Sequence record: MK250028.1
DNA: 64,000 nucleotides
Direction: 5' to 3' (one strand)
In this document: piece after piece, positions 1-61,308 of the stretch
How positions within the stretch are numbered: position 1 is the first letter of the stretch
Layout: each line of letters opens with the position of its first letter
Made by a program: the position numbers and the translations under genes
The notes under the pieces: generated by a model
The model's database searches: none
What the model was told of the DNA's origin: nothing
Seen by the model: the letters and a program-made list of their open reading frames with translations, nothing else

Positions 1-339
1 TTCATAAATAATTTCATTATTGTTTATGTGAGGAAACAAACATAACTATATGAATTTATAATAATGATGCTGCCAAAGAAAAATATGATTGAAAAATATC
101 AGGCTCTATATAAGATTTCTTATATTAGACTGCTTGTCCAAAGTGCATCAGGAGATATATATAGAATATTAAAGTCCTTTTAATATTGCTATTGCTTTCA
201 AAAAGATATATCTCCACGAGCTGAATAGAACAAATGAACGACTCAAGCTAATGTTTGGTTATATACATAAATCTTATAAGAATAAGAAGTGTCACTGTAA
301 CGGTCGGATGTGTAGTTAACTGACTTTAAAGTTATATTT

Positions 340-410
340 GGGTATTTAGCTGGAAGGTCAAGCATCTGACTGTTAATCAGAAGACGTGGGTTCGATTCCC
401 TCAGTACCCG
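340..410 (+). tRNA. trnN: tRNA-Asn(GTT)
   Basis: GGGTATT/AGTACCC acceptor, TCTGA-CTGTTAA-TCAGA anticodon arm, GTTCGATTC T-loop; short D-arm. Confidence 0.9.
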
Positions 411-520
411 CAAGTTAAAAACATAACATTTTATATATGAAGGCTCGTACCTTTCAAATTCAGATGATACCGTCAAGGCGGAGATATATAATGTTTCTGA
501 ATATGTTTTTTGATGATTGA

Positions 521-693
521 TTAAATAATAACGTAGTTTAACGGTAAATGAAGTCTTACGTTAAAGTAAGGGTTAAATAATTTAAGAAATAAAAACAGCG
601 CTATTTCTTTTATTTCTTAAAAAGAAGGGTTCATCACTGCGTATTGCAACTATGAAGTAAGGGAAGTGCAACTCCACCCTGTTAGTTATTTAA
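521..693 (+). ncRNA. Over-sized tRNA-like RNA (D-arm-like 5' part, extra long hairpins, degenerate T-arm)
   Basis: Ends pair 12 bp with one bulge (521-532/681-693); TAGTTTAACGGTAAAT D-arm-like segment; perfect 13-bp inverted repeat 582-594/608-620. Confidence 0.45.
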
Positions 694-760
694 TCTTATT
701 TTTAATTTAAATTAAATTTTTATTATAGTATACCACTTGTGAAAGCAGTATACTAGATTT

Positions 761-833
761 AGATGGTTAACTCAGTGGTTAGAGTTCTCGGCTTACATCC
801 GAGCTGTCAGGAGTTCGAATCTCTTACCATCTA
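761..833 (+). tRNA. trnV: tRNA-Val(TAC)
   Basis: AGATGGT/ACCATCT acceptor, CTCGG-CTTACAT-CCGAG anticodon arm, canonical T-arm. Confidence 0.95.
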
Positions 834-843
834 CCTTTTGGGT

Positions 844-1048
844 TTGTCTTTCGTATAGACATGGTATTACTATGGTCCTAAAGAAAAGAGAAGTAACGAG
901 GTATGAAAATGAAATATAGATAAGGGGAAAGGAGCATTAACTGCGAGTGCAGTGTGCAAAATGGAACTGGAGTGAAAGATGATTAGTGAAGCGAAAATTG
1001 AAGTATGTATTGTAAGGATAAAGGTGTGTTCGAATCCATCAAGACAAC
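844..1048 (+). ncRNA. tRNA-like termini enclosing a purine-rich insert of about 150 nt
   Basis: TTGTCTT/AAGACAA acceptor, Gln/Glu-like D-arm GTAT..ATTAC, T-arm GGTG(T)G-TTCGAAT-CCATC; no anticodon stem. Confidence 0.5.
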
Positions 1049-1387
1049 TAATAAAAATATTTATAATTTAAATAGACTTTTATATGTTTATTCAATATAA
1101 ATATTGAATCATAAAATATGAAGATATTTATGTTTTATATATTGAGTATTTATGAATTGAGTCGTTAGAAGAATTTAATTTATAAATTATGTATGTAAAA
1201 ATTAAATAAATTCATATTTTTAAAAAGATAAGATTTAGATAATTATTTTTCTATATAGTTAATATATAGTTTTTAAGGTTAACTTCATATATATTATAAA
1301 ATTTATATATGTTATTAAGTTAAATATCTAAATATTGTTTTTAACTCAAAAGAATTTTATAGGGTATTATCTAAATCTCTATAAATT

Positions 1388-1461
1388 GGGGGTATAGCTC
1401 AGTTGGCTAGAGCATCTGCTTTGCACGCAGAGGGTCATGGTTTCGAGTACCATTATCTCCA
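1388..1461 (+). tRNA. trnA: tRNA-Ala(TGC)
   Basis: Canonical cloverleaf with G3:U70. Confidence 0.97.
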
Positions 1462-1680
1462 CGCTAGGTGTGAAACATTACAGTAATAAGGATTAAACTA
1501 TATTATTAGACAATATACTTAATTACTTATTAAATAAATGAATTAAAGTAAACATGTAGAATATATTATTAAGTCTAAATATAAAATATATTTGAAGGCG
1601 TATGTTAATTTCATTCTGGTTAGAACCTATTTTAAATCCTATAGGTGAACGGGCAGCGGTGAATGTTTCAGGTAAAATTT

Positions 1681-1785
1681 AATGAAATATATTATCCCAC
1701 AGGGCAAGGGCGTGCTATTAAAATACCGTAAAGCCGGTAAGCTATAAGAGTATTAAAAGGTTCAATTCCTTTTGTATATTTCATT
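1681..1785 (+). ncRNA. Degenerate tRNA-like RNA
   Basis: 12-bp terminal stem AATGAAATATAT/GTATATTTCATT, D-like CCC..GGG stem, T-arm AAAAGG-TTCAATT-CCTTTT; anticodon arm poorly paired. Confidence 0.45.
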
Positions 1786-1791
1786 AATTTT

Positions 1792-1874
1792 GGGTGAGTG
1801 TCCCGAGTGGCAAAGGGGGCTGACTGTAAATCAGCTGTCATTTGACTTCGTAGGTTCGAGTCCTACCTCACCCA
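1792..1874 (+). tRNA. trnY: tRNA-Tyr(GTA)
   Basis: Class II cloverleaf, GCTGA-CTGTAAA-TCAGC. Confidence 0.97.
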
Positions 1875-1879
1875 CAAAT

Positions 1880-2296
1880 ATGTCAGAATTAAAAGAATAT
1901 ATATGTGAATCTTGTAATAAAAAGTTTTATTCTACTAAGACTTTTAGAAAAGATAGACATATAAAATGTGATGAATGCAAACAAAAACGTAAACATTCTA
2001 AAGAAAATGAATTAAATAGTATATTAGATTGTTCTAAAAGAACAATATCTAAAATATTGAAACGTTCAAAAATAGGATGTGCAATATGTGGGTGGAATGA
2101 ATCTACTTGTGATATTCATCATATAATAGAAAAATCTAATGGTGGAACTGATGATATTTCTAATTTAATTATTGTATGTCCAAATCATCATAGAATGATA
2201 CATACGAATAAATGCTATTCAATAGATTATTTACAAAGTTTATCTATTAAAAATACATTTAATAATTGGAAAGATTATTATCATCCAGAAAGATAA
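1880..2296 (+). CDS. Free-standing HNH endonuclease with N-terminal Zn finger
   Basis: CAICGW..CDIHHI..GG..NLIIVCPNHH motif. True start is ATG 1880; the ORF-track extension runs through tRNA-Tyr. Confidence 0.9.
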   Translation: MSELKEYICESCNKKFYSTKTFRKDRHIKCDECKQKRKHSKENELNSILDCSKRTISKILKRSKIGCAICGWNESTCDIHHIIEKSNGGTDDISNLIIVCPNHHRMIHTNKCYSIDYLQSLSIKNTFNNWKDYYHPER

Positions 2297-2318
2297 TTAG
2301 TTATGTAAGTTAAGATAT

Positions 2319-2393
2319 GGTGCGTTAGTTCAGTTTGGTCAGAATGCTACACTGTCACTGTAGAGGTCACGGATTCGAGTTCCGTACGCACCG
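2319..2393 (+). tRNA. trnD: tRNA-Asp(GTC)
   Basis: Canonical cloverleaf, CTACA-CTGTCAC-TGTAG. Confidence 0.96.
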
Positions 2394-2402
2394 CAAAAAT
2401 TT

Positions 2403-2638
2403 GGTTATATAGTTCAAAATAGGTGGAGTAGTTAATAACTGGTAATTGACATGAATATCTATTGGAAGTAATATAAAAACTAATATGAGATGTTTGCGGA
2501 TCAAATGGTATTATTCTTAAGCTCTTTTACCGTTATTAGTTTTTATATTATGAGTAAGTAGAGAATACAATAATTATCGTTTACTCATAGAATACCCTGG
2601 GTCGAGGGAGATTAATGGTTCGAATCCATTTATAACCG
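2403..2638 (+). ncRNA. tRNA-like RNA with a three-hairpin insertion of about 170 nt in the D-loop and a shortened anticodon arm
   Basis: GGTTATA/TATAACC acceptor, GTTC/GAAT D-stem separated by the insert, AATGG-TTCGAAT-CCATT T-arm; perfect 16-bp inverted repeat 2469-2484/2535-2550 inside. Confidence 0.7.
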
Positions 2639-2672
2639 CTATGAATATTATTAGATATGTTTATTGAAACAT

Positions 2673-2743
2673 TGGACTATAGTATAATGGTAGTACAGAA
2701 GATTTTGGTTCTTCTAGACTGGGTCCGAATCCCGGTAGTCCAA
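2673..2743 (+). tRNA. trnQ: tRNA-Gln(TTG)
   Basis: TGGACTA/TAGTCCA acceptor, GAAGA-TTTTGGT-TCTTC; T-loop TCCGAAT is atypical. Confidence 0.9.
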
Positions 2744-2783
2744 CGATTTTAGTGAATATTTAAAAATAATAAAAATATTATAT

Positions 2784-2856
2784 TGCGGGATGGAGCAGTT
2801 GGTAGCTTGTCGGGCTCATAACCCGAAGGTCGTGTGTTCGAGTCACACTCCCGCTA
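2784..2856 (+). tRNA. trnM: Initiator tRNA-fMet(CAT), copy 1
   Basis: 1:72 mismatch (T:T), three G-C pairs at the base of the anticodon stem. Confidence 0.95.
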
Positions 2857-2865
2857 CTATTAAAT

Positions 2866-3026
2866 GGACCTTGCGTATGGCTGGTGCCTGTACATTGGAC
2901 TGAATTAACAGAATAAACTGTATAAAATTAATCTCTATATATTATATTTTATGGATATAAAATTATTAGTTCGATTCTAATTATAGAGACAATCCAGGGG
3001 TTGTGGTTCGATTCCACAAGGGTCCA
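2866..3026 (+). tRNA. trnF: tRNA-Phe(GAA) interrupted by an 86-nt insert (exons 2866-2904 and 2991-3026)
   Basis: Joining the exons gives a 75-nt cloverleaf with TTGGA-CTGAAAA-TCCAG, GGACCTT/AGGGTCC acceptor and TGTGG-TTCGATT-CCACA T-arm. Confidence 0.85.
2905..2990 (+). other. Putative tRNA intron with nested tRNA-like acceptor/T-arm domain
   Basis: ACAG-AATAAA-CTGT hairpin; TCTCTATA(2932-39)/TATAGAGA(2982-89) stem; ATTAG-TTCGATT-CTAAT T-arm; ends in C. Confidence 0.8.
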
Positions 3027-3078
3027 CTTTAACTGAAAAATCATATATACAGTTCGAATAAATAAAATTAATTTTATT

Positions 3079-3945
3079 ATGAATTGCGAAAATTGTGGGA
3101 AATATTATATTAAACCTATTTATGGTTCTGGACGATTTTGTTGTGGAAGTTGTAGATGTGCATATACAAATAAACATAGGAAAATATCTAACGAAACAAA
3201 AGAAAAAATATCAGAGTCATTAAAAAGGTATTATAATATAAAAAATGATATAAAAATTAAAAAATATTTTTGCGGTACATTATAGTTAAATAATGAAAAC
3301 CCTGAAATATCAAAACATTAGTCATCAAAATGGTTTAATAAATTAATACCATTTGGATTAAATATTAATACATTATATACAAAAAAATTTGTTGATGAAT
3401 ATAATAAAGTTAAAGATTTATTATATACTGAATATGTAATTAATCAATTATCACCAAAAGATATTTATATTAAATATAATTGTAAAAAATATATAAATAA
3501 TTCTGAAACTTTATTACATCTATTTAAATCATATAATTTTCCTATACGACATTTTAGTGAATCAACAACAGTATCATATTTACATGGTAAATTAAAAGGA
3601 CCCACACATACATTAGGTAAAGATTGCTATCATATTACATGGAATAATAAAAAAGTATATTTACGAAGTACATATGAATTAGATTATGCATTATATTTAG
3701 ATTCAAAACAAATTGATTATGATGTTGAATGTAAGAGAATAAAATATTATGATTCTATTAAATAGAAATATAGATGCGCAATACCAGATTTTTATATTTC
3801 AAATAAAAATTTATTAGTTGAAGTAAAATCTAATTATACATTAGATATTTAGAATATGAAAGATAAATTTAATGAATATATAAAATTAGGATATAATGTT
3901 AAATTAATACTAGAACATAAAGAAACAGATTTATATAAATTATAA
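3079..3945 (+). CDS. Free-standing PD-(D/E)xK endonuclease with N-terminal Zn finger (code 15, 4 TAG)
   Basis: Open 288 aa with TAG=Q; CENCG..YGSGRFC and PDF..LLVEVKS motifs. Confidence 0.85.
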
Positions 3946-4021
3946 AATAATTATTAGAAATATACTTTACAGTTTTAATGTCGTATATTATCTAATAATG
4001 ATATAAACAAGTATAGACTTC

Positions 4022-4269
4022 CAAGTAGAATAATGAGTAAGTTTATAATTATATGCTAGCTAATTTATAGACAGAAGAACTGATAAGGGTTACAGGTCAA
4101 TTATTGAAAGGAATTGGTTTGAACATTAGTTCATAGATGTGAAGAGCAGCAGATTTCGTAAGAAGCCATAAGTTGACACACAACAATTTCGTAAAACAGC
4201 GCAAGTGCCTAATAGCGAGTATTCCTTTATATAAAGGGTGAAAAAGTCTGTGTCTCGTAAATCTACTTG
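4022..4269 (+). ncRNA. Candidate structured ncRNA
   Basis: Terminal 8-bp stem CAAGTAGA/TCTACTTG, nested AGACAGA/TCTGTGTCT pairing, GC-enriched, no ORF evident. Confidence 0.4.
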
Positions 4270-4277
4270 TTTAATTT

Positions 4278-4351
4278 TGGGTGGTAGTTCAGATGGTTAG
4301 AGCGCATCCCTGATAAGGATGAAGTCGTGAGTTCAAGTCTCACCCACCCAA
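4278..4351 (+). tRNA. trnI: tRNA-Ile(GAT)
   Basis: CATCC-CTGATAA-GGATG, canonical T-arm. Confidence 0.93.
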
Positions 4352-4539
4352 CAAATATTTAATAAAAAAGTTGTTAATAATATAAACTTTTAAATATTAT
4401 ATTCATATAAGATTATGAATTTAGTTCTTTGAAATATGAAAGAAAATAATTTATAAAATATTTTTTAATTACAAATAAAAATAAAAGATGTATCTTTTTA
4501 ATGTAATTAAAATAGTTATGTAAATTAAAATATAGAGTT

Positions 4540-4612
4540 GTTCCGTTAGCTCATCTGGCAGAGCACGATACTTTTAATATCGGGGTAACGAGTTCGAGTC
4601 TCGTACGGAACA
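4540..4612 (+). tRNA. trnK: tRNA-Lys(TTT)
   Basis: CGATA-CTTTTAA-TATCG, canonical cloverleaf. Confidence 0.95.
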
Positions 4613-4704
4613 CTATAACTTGATTAGTATATCTAAAATTAATTTATTAAAAAATATAAACATTTACTTATAAATTGAATATAATATAAGAGTTTAAAAA
4701 TTAC

Positions 4705-4778
4705 ACTACAGTAACTCAGTCGGTTAGAGTTCCAAGCTTATACCTTGGCGGTCGGGGGTTCAAGTCCCTCCTGTAGTA
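4705..4778 (+). tRNA. trnI: tRNA with TAT anticodon (nominal Ile, reads AUA)
   Basis: ACTACAG/CTGTAGT acceptor, CCAAG-CTTATAC-CTTGG; body resembles tRNA-Val at 761. Confidence 0.88.
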
Positions 4779-4974
4779 CAAATTGTAAATGAATTAAAGT
4801 ATTTGACTTATGATGAGACTTTAATTAGTAAGAAATATAAGTGTTTATGAAAGTTTATTTATGATGATGGAAGTCAATACAGCAAACATATATAATTATG
4901 ATAATGTTTACTAGAAAAAGAAAACTCAAATACTTAAAAATAAATGACTTCTGATTTTTATAATTTTGGTGAAT

Positions 4975-5048
4975 GGTTCTGTAGCTCAGTTGAACAGAGC
5001 AGTGCTCTTCTAAAGCACGGGTCGTGAGTTTGATCCTCACCAGAATCA
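4975..5048 (+). tRNA. trnR: tRNA-Arg(TCT)
   Basis: GTGCT-CTTCTAA-AGCAC; T-loop TTTGATC. Confidence 0.92.
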
Positions 5049-5093
5049 CATAATGGATTAAAGATAAATATATGAAACAATTAATTTTTATAT

Positions 5094-5390
5094 ATGATTA
5101 ATCCTGAAGTAATTATCAGTTAGGAAGACGTGAAAATAATTGATAGTTATAAAATAAAATCTATTAAAAACATGAAATGTGTTATTAATAGTATACGTGA
5201 AAAATGTGATAAAACTTATGTTATTCATAAAAGGAGTATGTATAGTTTAATAAATGAATGGAGATCACATAATCTTCTTTATGATTTGCATATAAAAAGG
5301 GAATAGACAAAAGATGTGGATTTAGATAATGAAACATTATTCAGAAAAATATGTTATTCAATATTATCTATATTTTATCTACATTTTTAA
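5094..5390 (+). CDS. Hypothetical protein (code 15, 2 TAG)
   Basis: Open 98 aa with TAG=Q; TAAATA upstream. Confidence 0.7.
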
Positions 5391-5725
5391 TATATAACGA
5401 GAGTTAGTAGTATAGCATTGTCCGGACCATTATTAAAAGTTTTAATTATTTCTTTTAGTAATGATATGCTGATTTAAATTATAAATAAATAGATTTAAAA
5501 AATAATTATGAATATAAGTAATTTAACCTTATATTTAAGAGAGACTGAAAGATTATTTTAATCTATTGATAATTAGTTTCAGGAGTTGAATATGGTTTTA
5601 ATCATGATATGTAGTTCCATTAAAATAAACTTCATGATATAGGAAGTATATGTTTTCTCGGTAAAGTATACGCCTGAATATTAGAATAAAAAGAATAGTG
5701 TCCGTAGATAAACTATTCAAATTTT

Positions 5726-5940
5726 GCTTCGATAGTTCAGTTGGTTAGAACGTCTGACTGTATACAGGAAACAACCTGATTAAATTAAACTACATAATGC
5801 TGTTAGGTATCAGACTTGCGGACGCAATATTGATTTATAACTATTATAGTAATAAATCTAAATCGCTGAAAGTTTAGTTGGTTCGAATCCAATTTATGTA
5901 GCTAATCAGAAAGTCGTAGGTTCGAGTCCTACTCGAAGCG
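5726..5940 (+). tRNA. trnN: tRNA-Asn(GTT) interrupted by a 141-nt insert (exons 5726-5761 and 5903-5940)
   Basis: Joining the exons gives a 74-nt cloverleaf with TCTGA-CTGTTAA-TCAGA (identical to tRNA-Asn at 340), a short variable loop and G73. Confidence 0.87.
5762..5902 (+). other. Putative tRNA intron with nested tRNA-like domain
   Basis: CAGG-AAACAA-CCTG hairpin; CTACATAA(5790-97)/TTATGTAG(5894-5901) stem; GTTGG-TTCGAAT-CCAAT T-arm; ends in C. Confidence 0.82.
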
Positions 5941-5945
5941 CAAAT

Positions 5946-6602
5946 ATGAGAGAAAAAGAATGTCGTATATGCCATATTCATGGTAATACATTATTTTCTT
6001 TATATACATATAATAATAAAATACATTGGGTATGTAATAAATGTTAGACAGAATATGTATAGCGACGTCGAGAACATTTAAAATTATTATCAGTTGCATA
6101 TAAAGGAAATAAATGTCAATGTTGTGGATATAATAAATGTATATCTGCATTAGAATTTCACCATATAGATCCTAATAAAAAAGAGTTTGGAATAGGATAT
6201 GCAGGTTATACACATGGATGGAATGATGTTAAATTAGAATTAGATAAATGTATTTTAGTATGCGCAAATTGTCATAGAGAAATACATGCTAATATAATAA
6301 AATGCCCAACTGAAATTATAAAAGATGAAGAAAATGTTAATATTTTATTAAATAAATTTAAATTTGATTCTATAAATAGGAATAATGATTATAAAAAATT
6401 AGTTGAAAAAATAGAACCAATTAAAAATTATACAATTCCTACAAAAGAAGAATTAATACAATTATTTAAGAAATATATTACATTTGAAAATATTGGTAGA
6501 TTATATGGTATTACAGGAAATGCCATTAAAAAATGGTGTAAAAAATATGATTTACCATATAAATCAAAAGAATTAAAAGAATATATAAATAAATTACCAT
6601 AA
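5946..6602 (+). CDS. Free-standing HNH endonuclease with C-terminal HTH-like region (code 15, 2 TAG)
   Basis: 218 aa; CQCCGY..LEFHHIDP..KCILVCANCHREIH. Confidence 0.88.
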
Positions 6603-6746
6603 ACGTCATGAGCCTTCTTAGAAAAAGGCGGTTTTAGTAACTGTACGAAGTATGTTAATACACGTGGTTAATATATATTTCAATAAGGGAAATTATAATG
6701 GATGTTGGCTAAGCAACTTCTTATATACGGTAATTTTTTAATATTT

Positions 6747-6850
6747 GGGAATATCTTCTCGTTGGTATGAGAACTCTACGGTAAGTAGAGTGCATTTGCA
6801 AACCGGTTGAAATGATCTTGCTTCACAGTGTTCGAATCCTGTTGTTCCCA
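6747..6850 (+). ncRNA. Non-canonical tRNA-like RNA (GTA triplet, G33, long variable region, bulged T-stem)
   Basis: GGGAATA/TGTTCCC acceptor, TTCTC/GAGAA D-stem, CTCTA-CGGTAAG-TAGAG, ACAG(T)G-TTCGAAT-CCTGT. Confidence 0.7.
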
Positions 6851-6950
6851 CAAATATTTTGAAAATATTTTTGATAAATATATAGACTTTACTATAAAGA
6901 TTACATATAATAATTATGAATTGAAAATAATTAAGATACGCAAATTAACT

Positions 6951-7022
6951 GGTGGGTTCGTATAGCGGTTAGTACTAGAGATTTTCATTCTCTAAACAGG
7001 AGTTCGACTCTCCTACCCACTA
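6951..7022 (+). tRNA. trnE: tRNA-Glu(TTC)
   Basis: AGAGA-TTTTCAT-TCTCT, canonical T-arm. Confidence 0.95.
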
Positions 7023-7034
7023 CTAATCAATAAT

Positions 7035-8030
7035 ATGAAATAGAATTTAGAATTTTTATCAGATGACGAATTAATATAGGAATATAGAAATTGTAATTAT
7101 TCTTTAAAAGCAGTTGATAAGAAATATAATAAATCTGGAAATACTTTATTACGATTATTTAGAAAACGTAATATAGATTATAATAAGATAAAGAATGATT
7201 ATTTATTACAATAGAAACAATTTGAAGAAAGTAAAGTTTTATATTGTGAGAATTGTGGTAAAGTAATAGATGGTTATTATGGTTCTGGAAGATTTTGTAA
7301 TAGATATTGTGCAACTGCATATGGCAATTCACATAGAGCAAAAAGAACAGAAGAATCAAAAAAGAAAACATCTATTAGTGTAAAAAATTCTATTAAATGT
7401 TAGATAGCTGCTGAACGTTCAAGAAAAATATATTAGTGCAAATATTGTAATAAAGATTTTTCTGTGTTTGATATACGCAATATTAGAGGAAGAACATATT
7501 GTTCAAAAGAATGTAAACACAAATATTTATCTGCACATACTGGTGGTTATCGAGAAGGTTCTGGAAGAGGCAAACAAGGATGGTATAAAGGAATTCATTG
7601 TGATAGTTCATGGGAATTAGCATTTCTTGTTTATTATAAAGATCATAATTTAAATATAGAACGTTGTAAAGAAAAAAGGTCTTATATTTGGAATAATGAA
7701 GTTCATTCATATTATCCTGATTTTATAACAGATGACGGGATAATAGAAATAAAAGGATATTCTACAGATTAGTGGAAATTAAAAGAAAACTAGAATCCGG
7801 ATGTAAAAGTTTTATATAAAGATGATATAAAACCATATTTAGATTATGTAATAAATACATATGGTACTGATTTTATTAAATTATATGATGGTTATAATCC
7901 AAAATTAGATTTGAAAAATTATACTTATGTATGGGTTCATAATGAAAAAGAGAATCATATGATTAGAACAGAATTATATGATGAATATATAAATAATGGT
8001 TATATAAGAGGAAGAAAAACTTTTAAATAA
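7035..8030 (+). CDS. Free-standing PD-(D/E)xK endonuclease with Zn fingers (code 15), same family as 3079
   Basis: 331 aa open with TAG=Q; CENCG..YGSGRFC, DSSWELAF, YYPDF..IIEIKG. Confidence 0.85.
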
Positions 8031-8107
8031 AAAATAGTTAAAAATAAACAAGATTTTAAATTTACGTTATTAAATTAAAAAGTTTCTTTATGAAATTAAT
8101 TTTAAAT

Positions 8108-8188
8108 ACTCCTATAGGCGAATTGGTCTAGCCACTAGATTAAGGATCTAGGTTTAATTACGTCTCGGTTCGAGTCCGAGTAGGAGTA
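8108..8188 (+). tRNA. trnL: tRNA-Leu(AAG)
   Basis: ACTCCTA/TAGGAGT acceptor, CTAGA-TTAAGGA-TCTAG, class II variable region. Confidence 0.9.
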
Positions 8189-8269
8189 CAATAATAATAT
8201 AAAATATTTTCTTATTTTATTATCAATTTCAAAAATAAATTAGATAAATAATAAGTTGAAATAATTTAT

Positions 8270-8342
8270 GCTGGATTAGCACAGTTGGTAGTGCGACGCA
8301 CTTGTAATGCGTAGGTCGTTGGTTCGAATCCGACATTCAGCT
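8270..8342 (+). tRNA. trnT: tRNA-Thr(TGT)
   Basis: ACGCA-CTTGTAA-TGCGT. Confidence 0.96.
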
Positions 8343-8369
8343 CAACATAACTTAATAATGTTTTTATAT

Positions 8370-8665
8370 TGCTGAATAATCTGTTAGCAGTGGATAAGGC
8401 ATTTAGGTTATATCTGAAAAGATATGATTTAGAGTAATCAATATTAAGAAACATAAGGTTAAAATAGCCATGGTTGGCCAACCATGAGTGACGTAAGAAA
8501 GGTCAAATCGTAGAATGGTATATGATGCTTGTAGCCTTTGAAGGTAATCAATCCTTCCGACATTTAGGAGTTAGCGTCATGAACTAACTTGTCGTGACTG
8601 AATAATGTGCTTAATATGTAATAGGGTTTGATGGTAGTCAGGAATCCATCTATGAATTCATTATT
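8370..8665 (+). ncRNA. Candidate structured ncRNA between trnT and trnM
   Basis: 18-bp perfect palindrome 8469-8486 plus several GC-rich hairpins; no ORF evident. Confidence 0.4.
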
Positions 8666-8683
8666 ATTTTTATGTTTTTATAT

Positions 8684-8756
8684 TGCGGGATGGAGCAGTT
8701 GGTAGCTTGCAGGGCTCATAACCCTGAGGTCGTGTGTTCGAGTCACACTCCCGCTA
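8684..8756 (+). tRNA. trnM: Initiator tRNA-fMet(CAT), copy 2
   Basis: Identical to the 2784 copy except for two compensated pairs in the anticodon stem. Confidence 0.95.
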
Positions 8757-8878
8757 CTAGTATGATGCATTTATTTTATGAATATGGATAACTGTTCGCG
8801 ATTGTGTATCTATAAAGTAATATTATAAATGAGGAAATATGAATGACAGTGATAATAATTGTACAATAAAACACTGCA

Positions 8879-8948
8879 TCCTGTTTGTTGTAACGAAAGC
8901 ATTTTCTCTTGAAAAGTGAAGGTTACGGTTTAATTCCGTAGACAGGAA
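8879..8948 (+). pseudogene. Degenerate tRNA (possible CTT/Lys anticodon)
   Basis: TCCTGTT/GACAGGA acceptor and TACGG-TTTAATT-CCGTA T-arm; weak D and anticodon arms. Confidence 0.55.
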
Positions 8949-9089
8949 CAAATTTTAATAGTCTATATTTAATTATATAGAATCGTAACTACAAGAACAT
9001 TAAATATTTTTAGTGGAAAGTCTTGGAGACCATCGTATTGGTACTGAGTTATAAGGTTCTCACAGAGTATAAACCTTAATTTTTTATTT

Positions 9090-9175
9090 GGAAAGGAAAT
9101 TGCGACGGCTCGCAAGCTTGTCTTGAAAACAAGTCGTACAGTGAAATGTATGGGGATCGACACCTCTCCTTTCCG
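9090..9175 (+). tRNA. trnS: tRNA-Ser(TGA)
   Basis: CTTGT-CTTGAAA-ACAAG, long variable arm, G73; T-loop ATCGACA. Confidence 0.88.
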
Positions 9176-9237
9176 CATTTTGTTTTACATATTTAAAGAC
9201 ATTATATATTTATAATATATAATGTCTTTAATTTTTA

Positions 9238-9245
9238 TATAAATA
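9238..9245 (+). promoter_or_regulatory. T4-type late promoter-like TATAAATA
   Basis: Exact match to the T4 late consensus just upstream of a TAG-containing gene; TAAATA recurs before several other TAG genes. Confidence 0.4.
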
Positions 9246-9267
9246 TTGAAATTTATTTTATTCACTT

Positions 9268-10260
9268 ATGAACAAATATATAAAGCAATTAGTTGAATAT
9301 TATTTTCATAACGAAAAAGAATTATATGAAAACAATTATAGAAAATTTAGAGAGAATTTTAATTGGTCTTATGAAAGACGATTATTATATCAATATAATA
9401 ATGATGTAGATTTTGATAATATAGTAAATGAAGAATATCATATAAGTGATGTTTTTGATGATGTTATAGATGTTATAGGAAATATTTATAAGGATAATAT
9501 AGATATAAGTAATGATATAAAAGTATATACAGGATATAATTTTAATATAAAAGATTCTTTATGTAAAAAACTAGATAATGAAAATATAAAATATCCTATA
9601 TATGTTTATATATTAAACGATACAGAATCAACTTCATATTCATATATAAAAAGTGAAGATAAGAATAATAATGAAATTGTTATATATTTAAATTCATATA
9701 TGATATAGGATAATATATAGTTATTACGTGATTCATGTAAACATGAGTTTTTACATATTAGAGAAATGTATGCATTAGAAGATAAAGATGTTTTATAGTC
9801 TAATAAAAATAAATTACCTGATGATGAAAAAAATCCTTTTAACTGGGATAATCCAAATTATTTTGATAAAAGTTTAAGATTATGTTATATATTTAATAAG
9901 TCTGAAGAACGAGCAAGATTAAATGCAGTATATGAACATATTAAATCAGAAGATGAAGATATTGATTCATTAAATAATATAACGTTATTAAACGAAATGA
10001 AATAGTGTATAAACACATTAAGAACTATTTTTATTTCTAATAATTATGGACCTATGGAAATATATAATTACTCATGCTATAAATATCATTTGATAAAATA
10101 TAAGTTAAACAAATATCATTTTGATTATAGACCAAGATTATCTGAATATTCATAGGATGACAAAGATAAATTTTAGGCAATGATATTTGAGTTACAAATA
10201 AATTATAGAAAATTCAAATAGGATATAAAGAAAATAATTTATAATAAATTTCATAAATAA
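9268..10260 (+). CDS. HExxH putative Zn metalloprotease (code 15)
   Basis: 330 aa open with TAG=Q; CKHEFLH motif. Confidence 0.7.
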
Positions 10261-10291
10261 TTATGGATAGTTTTGATAAAGAAATAAAGAT

Positions 10292-11065
10292 ATGAATATA
10301 ATAGGAAATTATATATATGGTTCAGAAGATTCAACTGATGTAGATATTGCATATATAGTTGATGAATTACCATCATTACAAGAATGTAAAAAGTTTTGTT
10401 CGGCTGATAAGAATGAAAACAGAAACTTAATAACGATAAATAACGGTATTATAACTAATTGTTATAAAGGAACAGTTGATGAATTAAATAATGCGATATT
10501 AGATACATATAAGTTACATGAACAAAATACAGAATTACTTATTAATAGAAAGGTTGGTAGAGATATACCATTGAAACTTATTAGAGCAATACGTGCAATG
10601 TTATCACATCTTTCTAGATCGCAATATAGAAAAGAAATAAAATTAGCATTAAGAAGTAATTGGTATAAGAGGTTAGACGTATTATTAAGTATTAATTTAG
10701 AATATATTGATTTTGATAAATTAAACAATAATATGTCAAGAGAAGATATATTGAAATTATTTGCATTTCAAATAGGTCAATGCATGGGACTTATATATGC
10801 AAGAAAAGAATTATATACAAAAAATGATGTTATTACATGGATAGGCAGTAATCTCGGTTATTGTCTTGATGATTATTTAAAACGAAAATATACAAGTTTA
10901 AATATATTAAATTATTTAAAAGATAAATTAATCTACCAGATTCGTTATAATTTTCCAGCAATAGAGTGTGATAATAATATAGTAAAATTTTTAAAGGACG
11001 GACATAATAAATATTATGATTTAATGCAGGAATGCCAAATAAATATTGAAAATAAAGATATTTAA
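10292..11065 (+). CDS. Pol-beta superfamily nucleotidyltransferase-like protein
   Basis: N-terminal YIYGS..STDVDI (GS..DxD) motif. Confidence 0.6.
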   Translation: MNIIGNYIYGSEDSTDVDIAYIVDELPSLQECKKFCSADKNENRNLITINNGIITNCYKGTVDELNNAILDTYKLHEQNTELLINRKVGRDIPLKLIRAIRAMLSHLSRSQYRKEIKLALRSNWYKRLDVLLSINLEYIDFDKLNNNMSREDILKLFAFQIGQCMGLIYARKELYTKNDVITWIGSNLGYCLDDYLKRKYTSLNILNYLKDKLIYQIRYNFPAIECDNNIVKFLKDGHNKYYDLMQECQINIENKDI

Positions 11066-11068
11066 TAT

Positions 11069-11455
11069 ATGAAGTTGATTTATAACAATATTATTCCTCC
11101 ACATGGATTTATAGCTATTAATATTTTTGGAAATCTTTTTGTAAGGAAAGAATATGAATATAAATTAAAGAATGATAATTATAAGAAAAGAGTATTAAAT
11201 CATGAATCTATCCATACAGAATAGATGAAAGATTTTGCAAGTTTTTTACCAGAATGTGTATAGCAATATATAGGTGGCATAATATTCTATATAATATATT
11301 TCTTTGAATGGTTATGGAGAGTCTTGTTTACAAAACATAGATTTTCACATTAGGCATATAGGAATATAACATTTGAATAGGAAGCCTTTACAAATGAATC
11401 AGATTTAGAATATTTAAGTAAACGAAATCATTTTGATTAGTGGAAAATATATTAA
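11069..11455 (+). CDS. Small HExxH protein (code 15)
   Basis: 128 aa with TAG=Q; LNHESIHTEQ and AYRNITFEQEA. Confidence 0.7.
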
Positions 11456-11460
11456 TATAA

Positions 11461-11497
11461 AAAGGATGTTAATTAAGTTTAACATCCTTTCTTTTTT
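11461..11497 (+). terminator. Intrinsic terminator
   Basis: AAAGGATGTTAA/TTAACATCCTTT stem plus T-tract. Confidence 0.8.
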
Positions 11498-11510
11498 CAT
11501 ATAAACAATG

Positions 11511-11518
11511 TATCTTTG
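11511..11518 (+). promoter_or_regulatory. Bacteroidota primary-sigma -7 element (TAnnTTTG)
   Basis: TATCTTTG upstream of 11564; the same octamer occurs at 23886 and (minus strand) 55016. Confidence 0.6.
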
Positions 11519-11563
11519 TAACTGTATAAATGAAGTAATAATTAATTAAAAATTATAATAATT

Positions 11564-11920
11564 ATGGTAGATCGTTTAAATCAAGAGTTAGAGCTGGATG
11601 ACTTGGTACTTATTGCGCATCCAAAAGTTTCAACATTGCTACGTTGCATTGTTACCAAGATCAATGCAAAGACAGTCACAGTAGCAGCACTCCCAGAGAA
11701 TGACAAAGAGAATGAGGCTGCACAATATTGCCAACATAATATGGCTGCTATAGGCGATCACAAGTTTCATGGAAACTATTTCAGAATAACAAAAGGATTC
11801 AATCGTCGTCCTGAGGAAGTTGTGAAGATTGGTCATTATCAAACAGTGCAAGACAATGGCAAAGATGTTCATTACTCTATTGTTGAAGTTGGTGATGAAG
11901 AACTTTGGCCAACTGATTAA
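11564..11920 (+). CDS. Hypothetical protein
   Basis: 118-aa ORF, TAG-free. Confidence 0.75.
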   Translation: MVDRLNQELELDDLVLIAHPKVSTLLRCIVTKINAKTVTVAALPENDKENEAAQYCQHNMAAIGDHKFHGNYFRITKGFNRRPEEVVKIGHYQTVQDNGKDVHYSIVEVGDEELWPTD

Positions 11921-11936
11921 TAATTAAATATAAATA

Positions 11937-12188
11937 ATGATTATGCAAAATATAGCAAATGAAATAAAAAATAGTAGTATAAAATTTCATAGTAATAAAT
12001 TAAATGGATTAGTAGATATGGTTATGTCTAATGATTCTAGTAATAAAATAGAATTACTACCAATTAATGATAGGGCATTAATTTATACTATGTATTGGTG
12101 TACATCTGAACATAGTAATCTATCAAGATATGAATTTGATAGGCTATTAGAAATGTCAAGGAAATTACGTAACTATTTAAATGAGTAA
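11937..12188 (+). CDS. Hypothetical protein
   Basis: ORF track; overlaps the start of the next gene. Confidence 0.65.
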   Translation: MIMQNIANEIKNSSIKFHSNKLNGLVDMVMSNDSSNKIELLPINDRALIYTMYWCTSEHSNLSRYEFDRLLEMSRKLRNYLNE

Positions 12189-12501
12189 AATAATGGTAAT
12201 AAATAATTCAAATATAAATACTTATATTAAGTTCGCAAGTGAGAAAGTATTGAATTACATTAAAGATTTTAATTCATACTTTGATGCTGATGAAGTATAT
12301 GACATTTTAAAAGAGTTATCTGAATATGATGTGAATATTATGAAATTCAATAAATATATCGGATTTCTTGTATGTCAAGTGTATAAGGATTTTATTAATA
12401 ATGAGATGATTATTGAAAAAAATACAGATTTTCAAAATTTCATTATTCCTATCATTATTAATATAAGTGATAATATTTTAAAAGATAAGATTGAACTATG
12501 A
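12181..12501 (+). CDS. Hypothetical protein
   Basis: ORF track; ATGA coupling to the next gene. Confidence 0.65.
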   Translation: MSKIMVINNSNINTYIKFASEKVLNYIKDFNSYFDADEVYDILKELSEYDVNIMKFNKYIGFLVCQVYKDFINNEMIIEKNTDFQNFIIPIIINISDNILKDKIEL

Positions 12502-12644
12502 CAGACGAACAATTAAAGAAGATATATGATAAGATTAATGAGTTGGTAGACACTGTTAATAAATTAAAAAGTATTATTGCAACTCAAGATAATAAGATAA
12601 GAATATTAGAGATTAAGTTAAATAATGTAGAAAATATATTGTAA
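12498..12644 (+). CDS. Small coiled-coil hypothetical protein (48 aa)
   Basis: Read from sequence; ATGA and TAATG overlaps with neighbours. Confidence 0.6.
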   Translation: MTDEQLKKIYDKINELVDTVNKLKSIIATQDNKIRILEIKLNNVENIL

Positions 12645-13006
12645 TGATAAGTAGTATAATTTTAATGTTATGTTTTTATATGTTTATTATTTCATTAACA
12701 TATCATAGAGATATTCAGGTAATAAACATATTTAATTTTTTTGGACCCATAGAATATACTATAAGATATATTGAAGAATTTGACAATGATTCAAAAATAT
12801 CAAGAAAATACTATAAAATTTATTGGAATTACTTCAGTATTTTGCCATTTTTTCACAATTTTTTGAGTAAAACTGATAATCAGATAGTATATACTGTAAA
12901 TGATGAAACTGAGTTAATTTCCAACTATTTTGTAACATATGAGTCCGCTAGAAATTTCTTATATAAGACAAGAGATTTCACTAAATTTATATTAAATGAA
13001 GAATGA
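12644..13006 (+). CDS. Hypothetical protein with N-terminal TM segment
   Basis: ORF track; hydrophobic N-terminus. Confidence 0.65.
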   Translation: MISSIILMLCFYMFIISLTYHRDIQVINIFNFFGPIEYTIRYIEEFDNDSKISRKYYKIYWNYFSILPFFHNFLSKTDNQIVYTVNDETELISNYFVTYESARNFLYKTRDFTKFILNEE

Positions 13007-13389
13007 AAAATATATTTAAAATAATTAAATTACTTTTCTCTTCAAAATAGTATGTAATATATGCTGTTGATAAAAAGGGAGAACAAGTAAAAGAATAGTC
13101 TAGTAATATTAATGAAACGTTTTGTCACCATATATATGATGATGCAAGATAGACTTTAATTAATACTGTTGGTGAACAAACATATGGTGAAAAATTAGAA
13201 TCATATGAACCAGATTTATTTAACGCATATAAAGAATCAGATTATCAAATAGCAAAATCTGAATATTTGCAAGCAGAATTAGATTACTATAAATTAGTGA
13301 ATAATCCTATGAGTGGAGACGCTAATATCTTATTCACAAGTTATTAGAGATTACAATAGCTAAAGAAACAATATGAAAATTTTTAGTAA
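13003..13389 (+). CDS. Hypothetical protein (code 15, 6 TAG)
   Basis: 128 aa open with TAG=Q; ATGA/TAATG coupling on both sides. Confidence 0.7.
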
Positions 13390-13754
13390 TGATAAAGTTT
13401 AAACATAAAAAGTATAATAAAACTAATTTTGATACTATTAATGTAAAAACAGCTAAAGAAGTTTGTGATATAATAATTAATAAGAAAACACAAGAACTTA
13501 TTAAGAAATGTCCAAGAACATTTAATTATATTAATAATGCAATAAATGAATCTATACGTTTATATTTTACTTCATGTATTATTTACAATAATATATTAGA
13601 TTATAATATAACATTAGATTTAAGCTGTATAAATTTTGATTTTATGAAAAAATCAAGATTTGATGTTATTAGCGATATATTAGAAGTGTATAGAAATAAA
13701 GGATATAAAATAATTCATAATGATAAAGATAAAATAACTATGTATTTTAATTAA
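13389..13754 (+). CDS. Hypothetical protein
   Basis: ORF track. Confidence 0.65.
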   Translation: MIKFKHKKYNKTNFDTINVKTAKEVCDIIINKKTQELIKKCPRTFNYINNAINESIRLYFTSCIIYNNILDYNITLDLSCINFDFMKKSRFDVISDILEVYRNKGYKIIHNDKDKITMYFN

Positions 13755-13803
13755 TATATATATAGACTTTATTAAAATTATATTATATAAATATATAGTT
13801 AAT

Positions 13804-13888
13804 GGAGAGTTAACCTAACGGGGTTAGGGACAATCTGCTAAATTGTTCGTCCATGTATGTGGATGTGGGTCGGGACCACAGCTCTCCG
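13804..13888 (+). tRNA. trnS: tRNA-Ser(GCT)
   Basis: ACAAT-CTGCTAA-ATTGT, long variable arm, G73; T-loop GTCGGGA is atypical. Confidence 0.88.
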
Positions 13889-13920
13889 CAAAAAATCCAC
13901 AACAGATTTAAAGATGTAGT

Positions 13921-14309
13921 GGTCTATAAGTTCGTTCCTTAATGAGAGATTATCACATTATATATGTGCACAAAAGAAATAATGTGATGGACCATAATGA
14001 ATAGATTATCTTAATTTTGGTATCTTCTGCAAGATTCTGATTATTGATAGAAGGTAGTTAAGCTAATTTCATATTCATTTCTATTACAGACGAAGAAAGA
14101 GGAACATTGTTTACAAGTAATAAAGAGTAACCAAATGTTATTGTTATATAGAACTGATATAATAATAGGTGAATGAAACGCTTGGCGCCAATATTAATAA
14201 AAGTGGTTGTTTATGAAAGTAATGTGTTTGATATAAAGATCTGATTAACTCATAAAGTCAAACCGGTATATATTAAATTTTTATATATAAGATAGTAAGC
14301 TTATAGATT
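13921..14309 (+). ncRNA. Candidate large structured ncRNA (about 390 nt) between trnS and trnQ
   Basis: 12-bp closing stem 13921-32/14298-309 and several internal 8-10-bp helices; no long ORF seen. Confidence 0.5.
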
Positions 14310-14313
14310 TTAT

Positions 14314-14384
14314 TGGGATATATTGTAATGGTAGCAACAGGGTTTCTGAGTCCCTTAGTACTGGTTCGAATCCGGTTATCCCAA
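14314..14384 (+). tRNA. trnQ: tRNA-Gln(CTG)
   Basis: TGGGATA/TATCCCA acceptor, AGGGT-TTCTGAG-TCCCT. Confidence 0.88.
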
Positions 14385-14443
14385 CATATTCGTAATTTTT
14401 ATTTTTTATTTTTTTATTTTTAAAGGATTTATACATAAAGAGA

Positions 14444-14477
14444 AAAGGTTAATAAGATTTATTTCTTATTAACCTTT
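14444..14477. terminator. Bidirectional terminator
   Basis: Perfect 14-bp inverted repeat between convergent units. Confidence 0.75.
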
Positions 14478-14502
14478 ATTATTTTATTTCTTAAAATAAA
14501 TA

Positions 14503-15126
14503 TTAATCTTCATCATCCCAATAATCATAATATTCATTTGGATCATAATTTAATTCTTTATCTTCCTTAAAATTATCAATCACCTTAGAATTTTCAACAA
14601 ATTCTTTTACTTTTTCTATAATATCTGCATCGTTAATCATTATTTCTTGAGTGCCATCTGTTAACATTAAACCATCAATATTTATTTTATCGATTTTACA
14701 TTCAGTTTCATCTGGATCATCAGGTTGATCATAATCATGTGAACGCATACCTGGTGTATAATCAACCCAACAATCAATGTCTGCATTAAATGCTAAACTT
14801 ACGCCATAATCTTCCATTGAACGTGTTAATATTGTTGCTGTTTCATTCTTTGGATCAACATCTGGTATAATATTACACATTAAACAATCGTCATCTTGAT
14901 CATATTGCTCTATATATCCATTATCATTAAGAAGATCCATAATTAATGAATTAATTAATTCTTGTGGCAGTGATTCCATATCAGAAAGATCAATATCTCC
15001 ATTTTCATCATAATACTTTGGATCAATATTAGATGATGTTATTATACCTTCATTAAGTGATTTCTTAAGTGCTGAAGCAATACCATTTACTAATGATTCA
15101 TATAATGCTTTATTTTGTTTCTTCAT
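14503..15126 (-). CDS. Acidic hypothetical protein
   Basis: 207-aa ORF; TAAATA upstream. Confidence 0.75.
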   Translation of the reverse strand: MKKQNKALYESLVNGIASALKKSLNEGIITSSNIDPKYYDENGDIDLSDMESLPQELINSLIMDLLNDNGYIEQYDQDDDCLMCNIIPDVDPKNETATILTRSMEDYGVSLAFNADIDCWVDYTPGMRSHDYDQPDDPDETECKIDKINIDGLMLTDGTQEIMINDADIIEKVKEFVENSKVIDNFKEDKELNYDPNEYYDYWDDED

Positions 15127-15222
15127 AATTTCTATTAAATGCTAAATTATTTTTTATATTTATCATTTTTAAAACTATTTAAAATAATTAATCTATAATA
15201 ATTAAAATAAAAGGTTTGTTTT

Positions 15223-15798
15223 ATGAGTACACGTTGTAATTTACAAATACAAGATAATATAGAAGGAGAACATATATTATATCGACACTGTGATGGTATG
15301 CCAGATTCTGCAGGTAATGAAATAAAGAATTTCCTTAATGACTATGTAAAGAATACTAATACAACATATAATTATGAAGAAATTTCTAAAGGTATTATAG
15401 AACAGTTAGGATTTGAAGACGAAGGTAAAGTAGCAAAAGATATAAACTATTTTTATGAAATTGTTGTGCATCCAAATACAATATTCTATACATGTTGGCA
15501 TGTACCTGTATTTGGCAATTATGATATTGATAGTTTGGAGGATTATCCTGATTGTGAAGAACTAGAATGTGAGGAATTCAATAAGTGTAATATACGAAAA
15601 GAAACTATTAATAAATCAACAGATGATATTGTTGATTCTAAAGAATTATTAAAATATGTAGATAGAAGAAATAAATTTCTTGATGAACTTTTAGATGAAG
15701 TTGAATTAAACGGTGGTATATCAAGAGACAAAATTATGAATATGTTAAAAGTAACATATGATCAGGGGTATAATTATAATAGAGTAGATAATATTTAA
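15223..15798 (+). CDS. Hypothetical phage protein (MSTR..LYRHCDG motif)
   Basis: 191-aa ORF. Confidence 0.75.
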   Translation: MSTRCNLQIQDNIEGEHILYRHCDGMPDSAGNEIKNFLNDYVKNTNTTYNYEEISKGIIEQLGFEDEGKVAKDINYFYEIVVHPNTIFYTCWHVPVFGNYDIDSLEDYPDCEELECEEFNKCNIRKETINKSTDDIVDSKELLKYVDRRNKFLDELLDEVELNGGISRDKIMNMLKVTYDQGYNYNRVDNI

Positions 15799-15810
15799 TT
15801 TATAATTGTT

Positions 15811-15990: not shown

Positions 15991-15992
15991 AT

Positions 15993-61221: not shown

Positions 61222-61308
61222 AATTATACAAATATAATAAAAGGATATTATCAAATAAATCAAATATTTGGTAATATCCTCATGTTATTAAAAATTAAAT
61301 ATTCATTA

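Follow-up and report, generated by a model that had tools for sequence, protein, structure and literature searches.

The stretch of DNA considered herein, 64,000 nucleotides (nt) of sequence record MK250028.1 (hereafter the window), opens with a tRNA array, within which the tRNA-Phe(GAA) gene at 2866-3026 is split by an 86-nt insert (2905-2990) that we assign to a family of tRNA introns carried by Lak megaphages. The 317 bases around the split gene are 100% identical to Prevotella phage Lak-B1 (MK250020.1), a megaphage of ~548 kb assembled from baboon faeces, and the G+C content of the window is 27%. ARAGORN called 17 tRNAs, with which Rfam was concordant, and the split tRNA-Phe gene was detected neither by ARAGORN in its default setting nor by the Rfam tRNA model. 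Once 2905-2990 is removed, the anticodon loop reads CTGAAAA, and the predicted joined exon sequence is GGACTGAA followed by AATCCAGG, where the 3' side begins AATCCAG. The joined Lak-B1 exons fall below the default threshold of ARAGORN and are called as tRNA-Phe(GAA) at 90% of that threshold; the joined tRNA has several G.U pairs and a weak D-arm. The published tRNA tables contain no tRNA-Phe gene for the Lak-B lineage (Devoto et al. 2019, PMC6784885), nor do they hold a further tRNA-Phe gene for these phages. The features of the locus, together with those of a second split gene and of candidate enzymes, are collected in Table 1.

Table 1 Coordinates of the split tRNA genes, of the parts of the tRNA-Phe intron and of other genes of the window that are referred to in the text (aa, amino acids; bp, base pairs; ORF, open reading frame).
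Feature	Position	Strand	Remarks
tRNA-Phe 5' exon	2866..2904	+	Acceptor 5' strand, D-arm, anticodon stem 5' strand, loop C32-A36; ends CTGAA
Intron of the Lak tRNA-intron family, 86 nt	2905..2990	+	Starts TTAACAG, ends GAGAC
5' module, UUA and hairpin P1	2905..2921	+	TTA 2905-2907; ACAG-AATAAA-CTGT 2908-2921
A/U linker ATAAAATTAA (also given as AUAAAAUUAA)	2922..2931	+	Family consensus AAAUYAAW
Nested tRNA-like module	2932..2990	+	Acceptor-like stem, GGAU-loop hairpin, T-arm, terminal C
8-bp acceptor-like stem	2932-2939 TCTCTATA with 2982-2989 TATAGAGA	+	Read from sequence
25-nt hairpin region with GGAT loop	2940-2964	+	Read from sequence
T-arm ATTAG-TTCGATT-CTAAT	2965-2981	+	Read from sequence
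Terminal C of the intron	2990	+	Last base before the 3' splice site
tRNA-Phe 3' exon	2991..3026	+	A37 to discriminator A73; C74 at 3027
Free-standing endonuclease-like ORF	3079..3945	+	Four in-frame TAG codons (sense in Lak); in the block separating Lak-B1 from Lak-B2
tRNA-Asn(GTT), interrupted	5726..5941	+	141-nt intron 5762-5902, between positions 35 and 36; same architecture
RNA ligase family protein, 227 aa	15993..16676	+	Candidate for exon sealing; PF09414 34 bits (cut-off 27); phrog_548 'RNA ligase' E=1.9e-12
RNA ligase family protein, 503 aa	56327..57838	-	Candidate for exon sealing; PF09414 27.2 bits (cut-off 27); phrog_968 'RNA ligase' E=3e-23
Thg1-like tRNA-His guanylyltransferase	60409-61263	-	E=1.6e-24; near the 503-aa RNA ligase
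S1-domain protein	62055-63164	-	Resembles ribosomal protein bS1; near the 503-aa RNA ligase

Introns in the tRNA genes of Lak phages have been reported before, and were termed 'enigmatic' and 'highly conserved' (Devoto et al. 2019, Nat Microbiol, PMC6784885). Table S6 of that study gives introns of Lak-A1 Tyr(GTA), Phe(GAA) and Thr(TGT) and of Lak-A2 Gly(TCC), with "no hit in rfam" entered against Tyr, Phe and Gly; of the Thr(TGT) intron the study remarked that it 'may encode a tRNA', Rfam having found a tRNA within it, and the true border of this intron was one base off the tRNAscan prediction. The borders were placed by eukaryotic tRNAscan settings (37/38), and the baboon B lineage was credited with a single intron, 'Tyr GTA'. 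This kind of intron is already known, but the Lak-B1 tRNA-Phe copy was not listed, and the architecture common to these introns and their mimicry of phage tRNA 3' ends, both set out below, are undescribed there. We found no mechanistic study of the Lak tRNA introns after 2019 in the literature searched.

The borders of the insert are fixed at 36/37 because three kinds of natural allele exist, namely uninterrupted genes, intron-bearing genes and an exact exon join. In Lak-B2, B4, B7 and B8, the match to our query stops at base 2904, and the gene is uninterrupted there, the intron being absent; the uninterrupted gene of Lak-B2 has the loop CTGAAAC and is a tRNA-Phe(gaa) by ARAGORN (contig L001, 3083-3158), with a 5' half that shows a single difference from the Lak-B1 5' exon, at base 2896. 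In Lak-A1, A2 and C1, the same insertion point is occupied by an intron of 79 nt, and the Lak-A1/C1 locus, which is ~85% identical to Lak-B1 over the region, contains the very intron sequence printed in Table S6 of PMC6784885. The third kind of allele is the exact 75-nt join of the Lak-A1 exons, present in a metagenome contig (L143, 6927-7001), and this empty site scores 49.5 bits on the Rfam tRNA model. Zero bases are common across either border, hence the intron is TTAACAG...GAGAC between A36 and A37 and lies there without target duplication. The initial annotation of this DNA had proposed that removal of the insert restores CTGAAAA at the 36/37 junction; these borders are confirmed by the natural alleles, and each element that it had listed within the insert was found where it had been placed. 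The exons, for their part, have changed between lineages: 3 of the 36 bases of the 3' exon differ between Lak-B1 and Lak-A1, the T-stem shows a compensatory change (TGTGG/CCACA in Lak-B1 vs CGTGG/CCACG in Lak-A1), and a U.G pair of the Lak-B1 anticodon stem is C-G in Lak-A1. That the exons diverge yet keep their pairing argues, if indirectly, for splicing.

Copies gathered from 15 Lak genomes, IMG/VR and metagenomes amounted to 12 distinct variants, which fall into four types (Phe, Thr, Gly and Asn, the last published as "Tyr") with a common plan. From the 5' exon onwards, this plan begins with WUA and the P1 hairpin, whose stem of 4-5 bp closes a 6-nt loop rich in A (AAUAAA in most cases). 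An A/U linker of 10-12 nt with the consensus AAAUYAAW leads to an 8-nt strand, and next comes a hairpin that has GG inside or next to the loop; an extra arm is present in some types and is GNRA-capped in Thr. The plan closes with a 5-bp T-stem with the loop UUCGWWU, the 8-nt partner strand, one C and the 3' exon. The helical stack consists of 8+5 bp (7+6 in Thr), and the initial description of an acceptor-like stem placed on a T-arm and ending at the junction was borne out, with the stack and one C reaching the 3' border. The linker motif AAATYAAWCT is common to the four types though it is single-stranded, and the T-stem pair adjoining the loop is G-C in 10 of 10 variants. The nested T-loop contains TTCGA in every type except Thr. 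GG occurs in all types within or next to the loop of the hairpin that comes first after the acceptor strand, a possible counterpart of the D-loop GG that contacts the T-loop in the tRNA elbow; a canonical D-arm is present in Thr only, and the nested modules have no anticodon loop in any type, that of Phe having no anticodon arm altogether.

The stem pairs are kept by covariation. Among seven structurally distinct variants, P1, the acceptor-like stem and the T-stem have canonical pairs at all 119 of 119 positions, with at least two pair types at all pair positions but one, whereas 3' strands swapped between types gave 62 canonical pairs of 119 on average and 66 at most. These pairs were counted by a script and not from an alignment, because in the MAFFT output the acceptor strand of Phe was shifted by one column against the other types. 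P1 pairs co-vary between types, the nested T-stem shows two double compensatory changes between Lak-B1 (ATTAG/CTAAT) and Lak-A1 (AATGG/CCATT), and the eighth acceptor pair of the Asn type is either A-T or G-C. The nested T-loop of the Phe copies varies at positions 59-60 only (TTCGATT, TTCGATC, TTCGACT), as in real tRNAs. The module goes beyond what chance would give: when the insert was shuffled by mononucleotides 200,000 times, a 5-bp/7-nt hairpin with a TTCRA loop and a 7-bp stem directly after it was obtained 36 times. The initial annotation had named a lack of conservation of the insert among the points that would speak against it; the module is kept, with compensatory changes, in the relatives.

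The point of insertion is not the same in all types. It lies at 36/37 in Phe and Thr and at 35/36 in Asn; the Gly join leaves an ambiguity of one A and is likewise read as 36/37. Two distances are constant across types, with 3 nt from the 5' site to P1 and one C from the tRNA mimic (i.e., the nested module) to the 3' site. Since the insertion point varies while these two distances do not, it would be the intron and not the tRNA body that specifies the cuts, and we infer that the position of each splice site follows from structures within the intron.

Known classes of intron were compared with these properties. A group I intron is rejected, as 86 nt are too few for a P3-P9 core with P7, the 3' base is C and not G, and there is no Rfam match; a group II intron is rejected for its part on the length of 86 nt, without an ORF, and the same lack of a match. 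The underlying Rfam scan of window positions 1-16000 gave zero group I, group II or ribozyme matches at E<=1, and that of two related loci no intron matches at E<=0.1. Likewise, the covariance models of the hammerhead, twister, twister-sister, pistol, hatchet, HDV-like and hairpin ribozymes gave no match at E<=1. The 3' base of the intron is C in every type, and the last bases of the 5' exon are A, U, C and U across the four types. A bulge-helix-bulge is rejected as well, in that the strands that would have to form the central 4-bp helix between its two 3-nt bulges, CUGA/UGAA of the exon ahead of the 5' site and AGAG/GAGA of the intron ahead of the 3' site, are not complementary, and AGAG/GAGA is already paired in the nested stem. 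On these grounds (size, terminal C, no Rfam match at E<=1 and non-complementary strands), both of the exclusions made by the initial annotation, of a group I intron and of a bulge-helix-bulge, were upheld. An internal guide sequence for both exon ends, a pairing between the intron start and the linker and a pseudoknot with the P1 loop were also sought; short A/U pairings of these kinds occur in single types, and none of them across the four.

The second split gene of the window (Table 1) shows how the same architecture is used in another tRNA. The gene published as Tyr(GTA) is, by its predicted join (GACTGT followed by TAATCAG), tRNA-Asn(GTT), with the intron at 35/36; this is concluded because ARAGORN reads the join of 5726-5941 as tRNA-Asn(gtt), an intronless tRNA-Asn ortholog in Lak-A1 (contig L002, 5809-5883) reads CTGTTAA, and the split gene has a short variable loop and G73. 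ARAGORN in its intron mode finds only this second intron and names the gene Ser(gct), a reading that is contradicted by the GTT of the intronless ortholog. Of two tRNA-Asn paralogs, the one that holds the Asn intron in the A lineage is not the one that holds it in the B lineage, and Asn introns of identical sequence were found within different tRNA-Asn bodies, a placement by which mobility is indicated.

At the Phe locus, the intron is present in Lak-B1 and absent from Lak-B2 as part of a larger block. Lak-B1 and Lak-B2 are identical up to 2904 (with one mismatch) and again from 3951 onward, and in between, 2905-3950 of Lak-B1 stands in place of 40 nt of Lak-B2. The block holds the intron, a Lak-A1-like 3' exon and the ORF at 3079-3945, for which matches to NUMOD3, DUF7487, phrog_314 'homing endonuclease' and phrog_15137 'endonuclease' are weak and all below curated cut-offs. 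The link between the Phe intron and this ORF is not obligatory, because Lak-A1 has the Phe intron without the neighbouring ORF. Free-standing endonuclease genes are found among the tRNA genes at 1880-2296, 3079-3945, 5946-6602 and about 7430-8040. HNH endonuclease ORFs follow tRNA-Tyr and the split tRNA-Asn, and the HNH assignment lies above the Pfam cut-off for 1880-2296 and 5946-6602; the ORFs at 3079-3945 and ~7430-8040 have weak endonuclease matches and a PD...E-x-K-like motif. In-frame TAG codons occur in three of the four genes (not in 1880-2296), which fits the Lak code with TAG as sense. An insertion of the IS200/IS605 type or of the MITE type is unlikely, given that there is neither a conserved target nor a target duplication.

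When tighter patterns of the family were run against viral and metagenome collections, Lak contigs only were returned, and the same patterns gave one match, a false positive, in 185,579 species-representative bacterial and archaeal genomes; a looser pattern gave >120 matches, mostly false. With the patterns used, these introns thus appear as a small family of mobile tRNA introns that has been found so far in Lak megaphages only.

The 3' end of the intron invites comparison with the ends of the phage's own tRNA genes. All 17 of the ARAGORN-called tRNA genes of the window have C at position 74 and none of the 17 encodes CCA (e.g. 340-411 and 4278-4352), with C75 present in tRNA-Val only; having C74 without CCA, these genes need 3' processing and CCA addition to reach mature ends. 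The mimic resembles them at its 3' end, where a base paired to N-1 is followed by C and then by AA or UA. It can be read as a 7/5 tRNA, in which N73 pairs with N-1 and C74 follows, or as an 8/5 stack of 13 bp, in which the C is the discriminator, and on either reading the 3' splice site would be the expected cut point of a tRNA 3'-end endonuclease.

Candidates for the rejoining of exons are encoded in the window in the form of two RNA ligase family proteins (Table 1). The 503-aa protein is homologous over nearly its full length to genes that carry the annotation 'RNA ligase' in many phages, and in one listed phage record its match also overlaps a polynucleotide kinase gene; sequence searches of the PDB with the two ligases found nothing. 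Of the other genes considered, the S1-domain protein is rejected as a nuclease, for it resembles ribosomal protein bS1 instead, and two metallophosphoesterases are also encoded in the window. A CCA-adding enzyme and a T4 Rnl2-like ligase have been listed in Lak genomes (Devoto et al. 2019, PMC6784885). Judging from this gene content, enzymatic resealing by a phage ligase is plausible.

The interruption is a genuine feature with good support, and a working tRNA-Phe(GAA) would need removal of the insert exactly between A36 and A37. We tentatively propose, as a possibility that we favour at well below even confidence, that tRNA end-processing enzymes cut at the mimic, that an endonuclease measuring from P1 cuts the 5' site and that a phage RNA ligase reseals the exons. 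In this scheme the nested mimic would be handled as one of the phage's own pre-tRNAs: an RNase Z-type tRNA 3'-end endonuclease would cut after the C and so generate the 3' splice site, RNase P would probably cut at the 5' end of the mimic, and a second endonuclease, measuring from P1, would make the 5' cut in the A/U-rich stretch. The resulting 3'-OH and 5'-phosphate ends, held by the tRNA body, would then be sealed by a phage RNA ligase. Spread among Lak tRNA genes would take place at the DNA level, possibly aided by the free-standing endonuclease genes beside the tRNAs. RNase P itself was rejected as the maker of the 5' splice site, as the acceptor-like stem begins 27 nt downstream of that site. 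That the introns represent a third route of tRNA splicing, in which the mimic recruits RNase Z/RNase P and a phage ligase of the T4 Rnl type rejoins the exons, is a claim that we regard as rather doubtful; if it held, splicing would arise as a side effect of the maturation of pre-tRNAs together with RNA repair, and would involve neither a ribozyme nor a bulge-helix-bulge endonuclease.

Several points weigh against cutting by end-processing enzymes. For the 5' cut, 3 nt upstream of the 4-bp P1, we found no conserved pairing or known enzyme rule, and the general endonucleases that are invoked for it seldom cut with single-base precision. The usual cut of RNase Z falls after the discriminator, and in Bacillus C74 acts as an anti-determinant; because of these rules, the RNase Z reading needs either the 13-bp, tRNA-Sec-like 8/5 geometry, with the C as discriminator, or an enzyme that cuts after C74. 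The T-loop of the Thr type, UUCGUUU, is without A58, and the conserved linker and P1 loop could fit a ribozyme core or the binding site of a dedicated protein equally well. RNA ligases are common in phages without tRNA introns, which makes their presence here circumstantial, and the support for splicing as such lies at the level of DNA sequence.

It is conceivable, if doubtful, that a dedicated splicing endonuclease encoded by the phage binds P1 and the mimic, the latter serving as a protein handle, and makes both cuts, with a phage ligase or the host RtcB sealing the exons. This would account for splice sites that both stand at fixed distances from intron structures, and for the conservation across types of the AAAUYAAW linker and of the A-rich P1 loop, as for a protein-binding site; that most Lak genes are without an assigned function (PMC6784885) also counts in its favour. 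Against it, Pfam gave no candidate (no EndA/Sen-like or other RNA endonuclease) among the 30 largest ORFs of the 64-kb window, in a genome of ~548 kb.

The same conserved single strands bear on a further reading, which we consider unlikely, that of a new and very small self-splicing or self-cleaving ribozyme with P1, the linker and the tRNA-like fold as its core. The unpaired WUA, the AAUAAA loop and the AAAUUAAA linker are conserved and the fold is compact and co-varying, and the bacterial tRNA introns known so far are, as a matter of general knowledge, self-splicing. However, no Rfam ribozyme or intron family matches at E<=1, and the middle of the fold can be exchanged freely, its length ranging from 18 to 79 nt and the extra arm being present or absent. 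The last base of the 5' exon is variable (A, U, C) and no guide pairing with the exon is conserved across types, and at 79 nt the intron would undercut any known self-splicing intron.

The alleles that define the borders also speak to whether splicing takes place at all. Were the intron a selfish insertion that is never spliced, the Lak-B1 tRNA-Phe would be dead and the module released by RNase P/RNase Z, e.g. a decoy or regulatory tRNA-like RNA, would be its sole product, which we hold to be quite improbable. Phages of the Lak-B2 type manage with an intact gene and those of the Lak-B1 type with a split one, the joined Lak-B1 gene is below the ARAGORN default threshold, and the host, as is generally known, has its own tRNA-Phe. 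This is countered by exon pairing that is kept perfect through compensatory changes between lineages, by the existence of an intact join of identical (Lak-A1) exons with 49.5 bits as a tRNA, and by the absence of other tRNA-Phe genes from the published tRNA tables; moreover, the four interrupted tRNAs read A/U-ending codons, for which demand would be expected to be high at 27% G+C.

Finally, cuts one base earlier at both sites (on the 3' side, at the canonical RNase Z site), by which a C would enter the anticodon loop and change, e.g., GAA to GAC, are permitted by loop arithmetic (CTGA+CAA for Phe) and are what the ARAGORN intron mode assumes when it reads the Asn gene as 'Ser(gct)', but they are extremely improbable, as intronless alleles with the same exons read GAA, the intronless Asn ortholog reads GTT, and the shift would hit anticodon position 36 in Phe and Thr but 35 in Asn, with no consistent rule.

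Other tRNA-like elements were seen in the window, which we list as observations in their own right. Between tRNA-Asp and tRNA-Gln, 2402-2640 holds a conserved RNA of ~238 nt (2326-2563 of the Lak-A1 contig L002), bounded by an acceptor stem of 7 bp (GGTTATA/TATAACC) and by a T-arm (AATGG-TTCGAAT-CCATT), in both stems of which Lak-A1 shows compensatory changes; it has a fold z-score of -2.65 and no Rfam or ARAGORN call, and may represent either a structured RNA with tRNA ends or a tRNA that contains a large insert of a different kind. At 1681-1790, an 11-bp stem, AATGAAATATA/TATATTTCATT, surrounds a hairpin that resembles a T-arm (AAAAGG-TTCAATT-CCTTTT); the element stops 6 nt short of tRNA-Tyr, and Lak-A1 shows a related one upstream of its own tRNA-Tyr. 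The 69 nt at 21150-21218 are tRNA-shaped (acceptor TTATTAT/ATAATAA, T-arm ATCGG-TTCGAAC-CCGAT) with no recognisable anticodon arm and no ARAGORN call. Two more tRNA-like elements, neither called by any tool, share GTTCGAATCC: one at 6747-6850, where GGGAATA...TGTTCCC lies around it and which is conserved in another Lak contig (L087), and one at 838-1050, with GGTTTGTCTT...AAGACAAC. Outside the tRNA genes, fragments of NrdD (anaerobic ribonucleotide reductase) at 38881-42995 on the minus strand lie beside a match to an intein splicing domain and an ORF with NUMOD4 and HNH_3 (39830-40366), which suggests that nrdD is interrupted by an intein or a homing endonuclease.

The Lak introns share traits with several known systems. 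Like the bulge-helix-bulge introns of archaea and eukaryotes, they are short, sit in the anticodon loop, are probably removed by proteins and have related copies in several tRNA genes; in the Thermoproteales, intron transposition has reportedly been described, with related introns in different tRNA genes. However, the archaeal and eukaryal introns stand at 37/38 with a bulge-helix-bulge, whereas the Lak introns stand at 36/37 or 35/36 without one, and in a bacterial host. With the bacterial group I introns (cyanobacterial tRNA-Leu(UAA), tRNA-fMet and Azoarcus tRNA-Ile) they have in common the interruption of the anticodon loop and the existence of intron-plus and intron-minus alleles, but those introns are ~200 nt or more, with a 3' G and a U at the 5' site, while the Lak introns are 79-141 nt, end in C and have neither P7 nor the conserved U.

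The mimic itself recalls processing signals that are cut by RNase P and RNase Z, namely mascRNA (MALAT1), the t-elements of plant mitochondria and tRNA punctuation, in which an acceptor/T-arm stack without a working anticodon is placed at an end that is needed. Those systems involve cutting only, whereas the flanks of the Lak module, which lies inside another tRNA, would need rejoining. For that step, the tRNA repair of phage T4 (Pnkp + Rnl1) is a likeness, as it shows that phage RNA ligases can seal a break in the anticodon loop, and for the spread of the introns, T4 SegB and the 'collaborative homing' of F-CphI (cyanophage psbA) offer endonuclease genes beside tRNAs or introns, with intron and endonuclease in one block. 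In contrast to these systems, the tie of the Lak ligases or endonucleases to the intron is drawn from the presence of the genes.

Two ways of removing tRNA introns are known: group I introns of bacteria and organelles splice themselves, and the introns of archaea and eukaryotes are cut out by bulge-helix-bulge endonucleases. Neither route suits the Lak introns, which have been unexplained since 2019 in the literature searched. What is added herein to the description as 'enigmatic' is a common architecture, exact borders from empty-site alleles, splice sites tied to a hairpin and a mimic, an intron 3' end that copies those of the phage pre-tRNAs, and candidate ligases nearby. In addition, one published assignment is corrected from Tyr to Asn, and an unlisted tRNA-Phe gene is added to the B-lineage Lak genomes. 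If true, the route via processing enzymes would be a new splicing pathway and would provide a natural job for phage RNA ligases.

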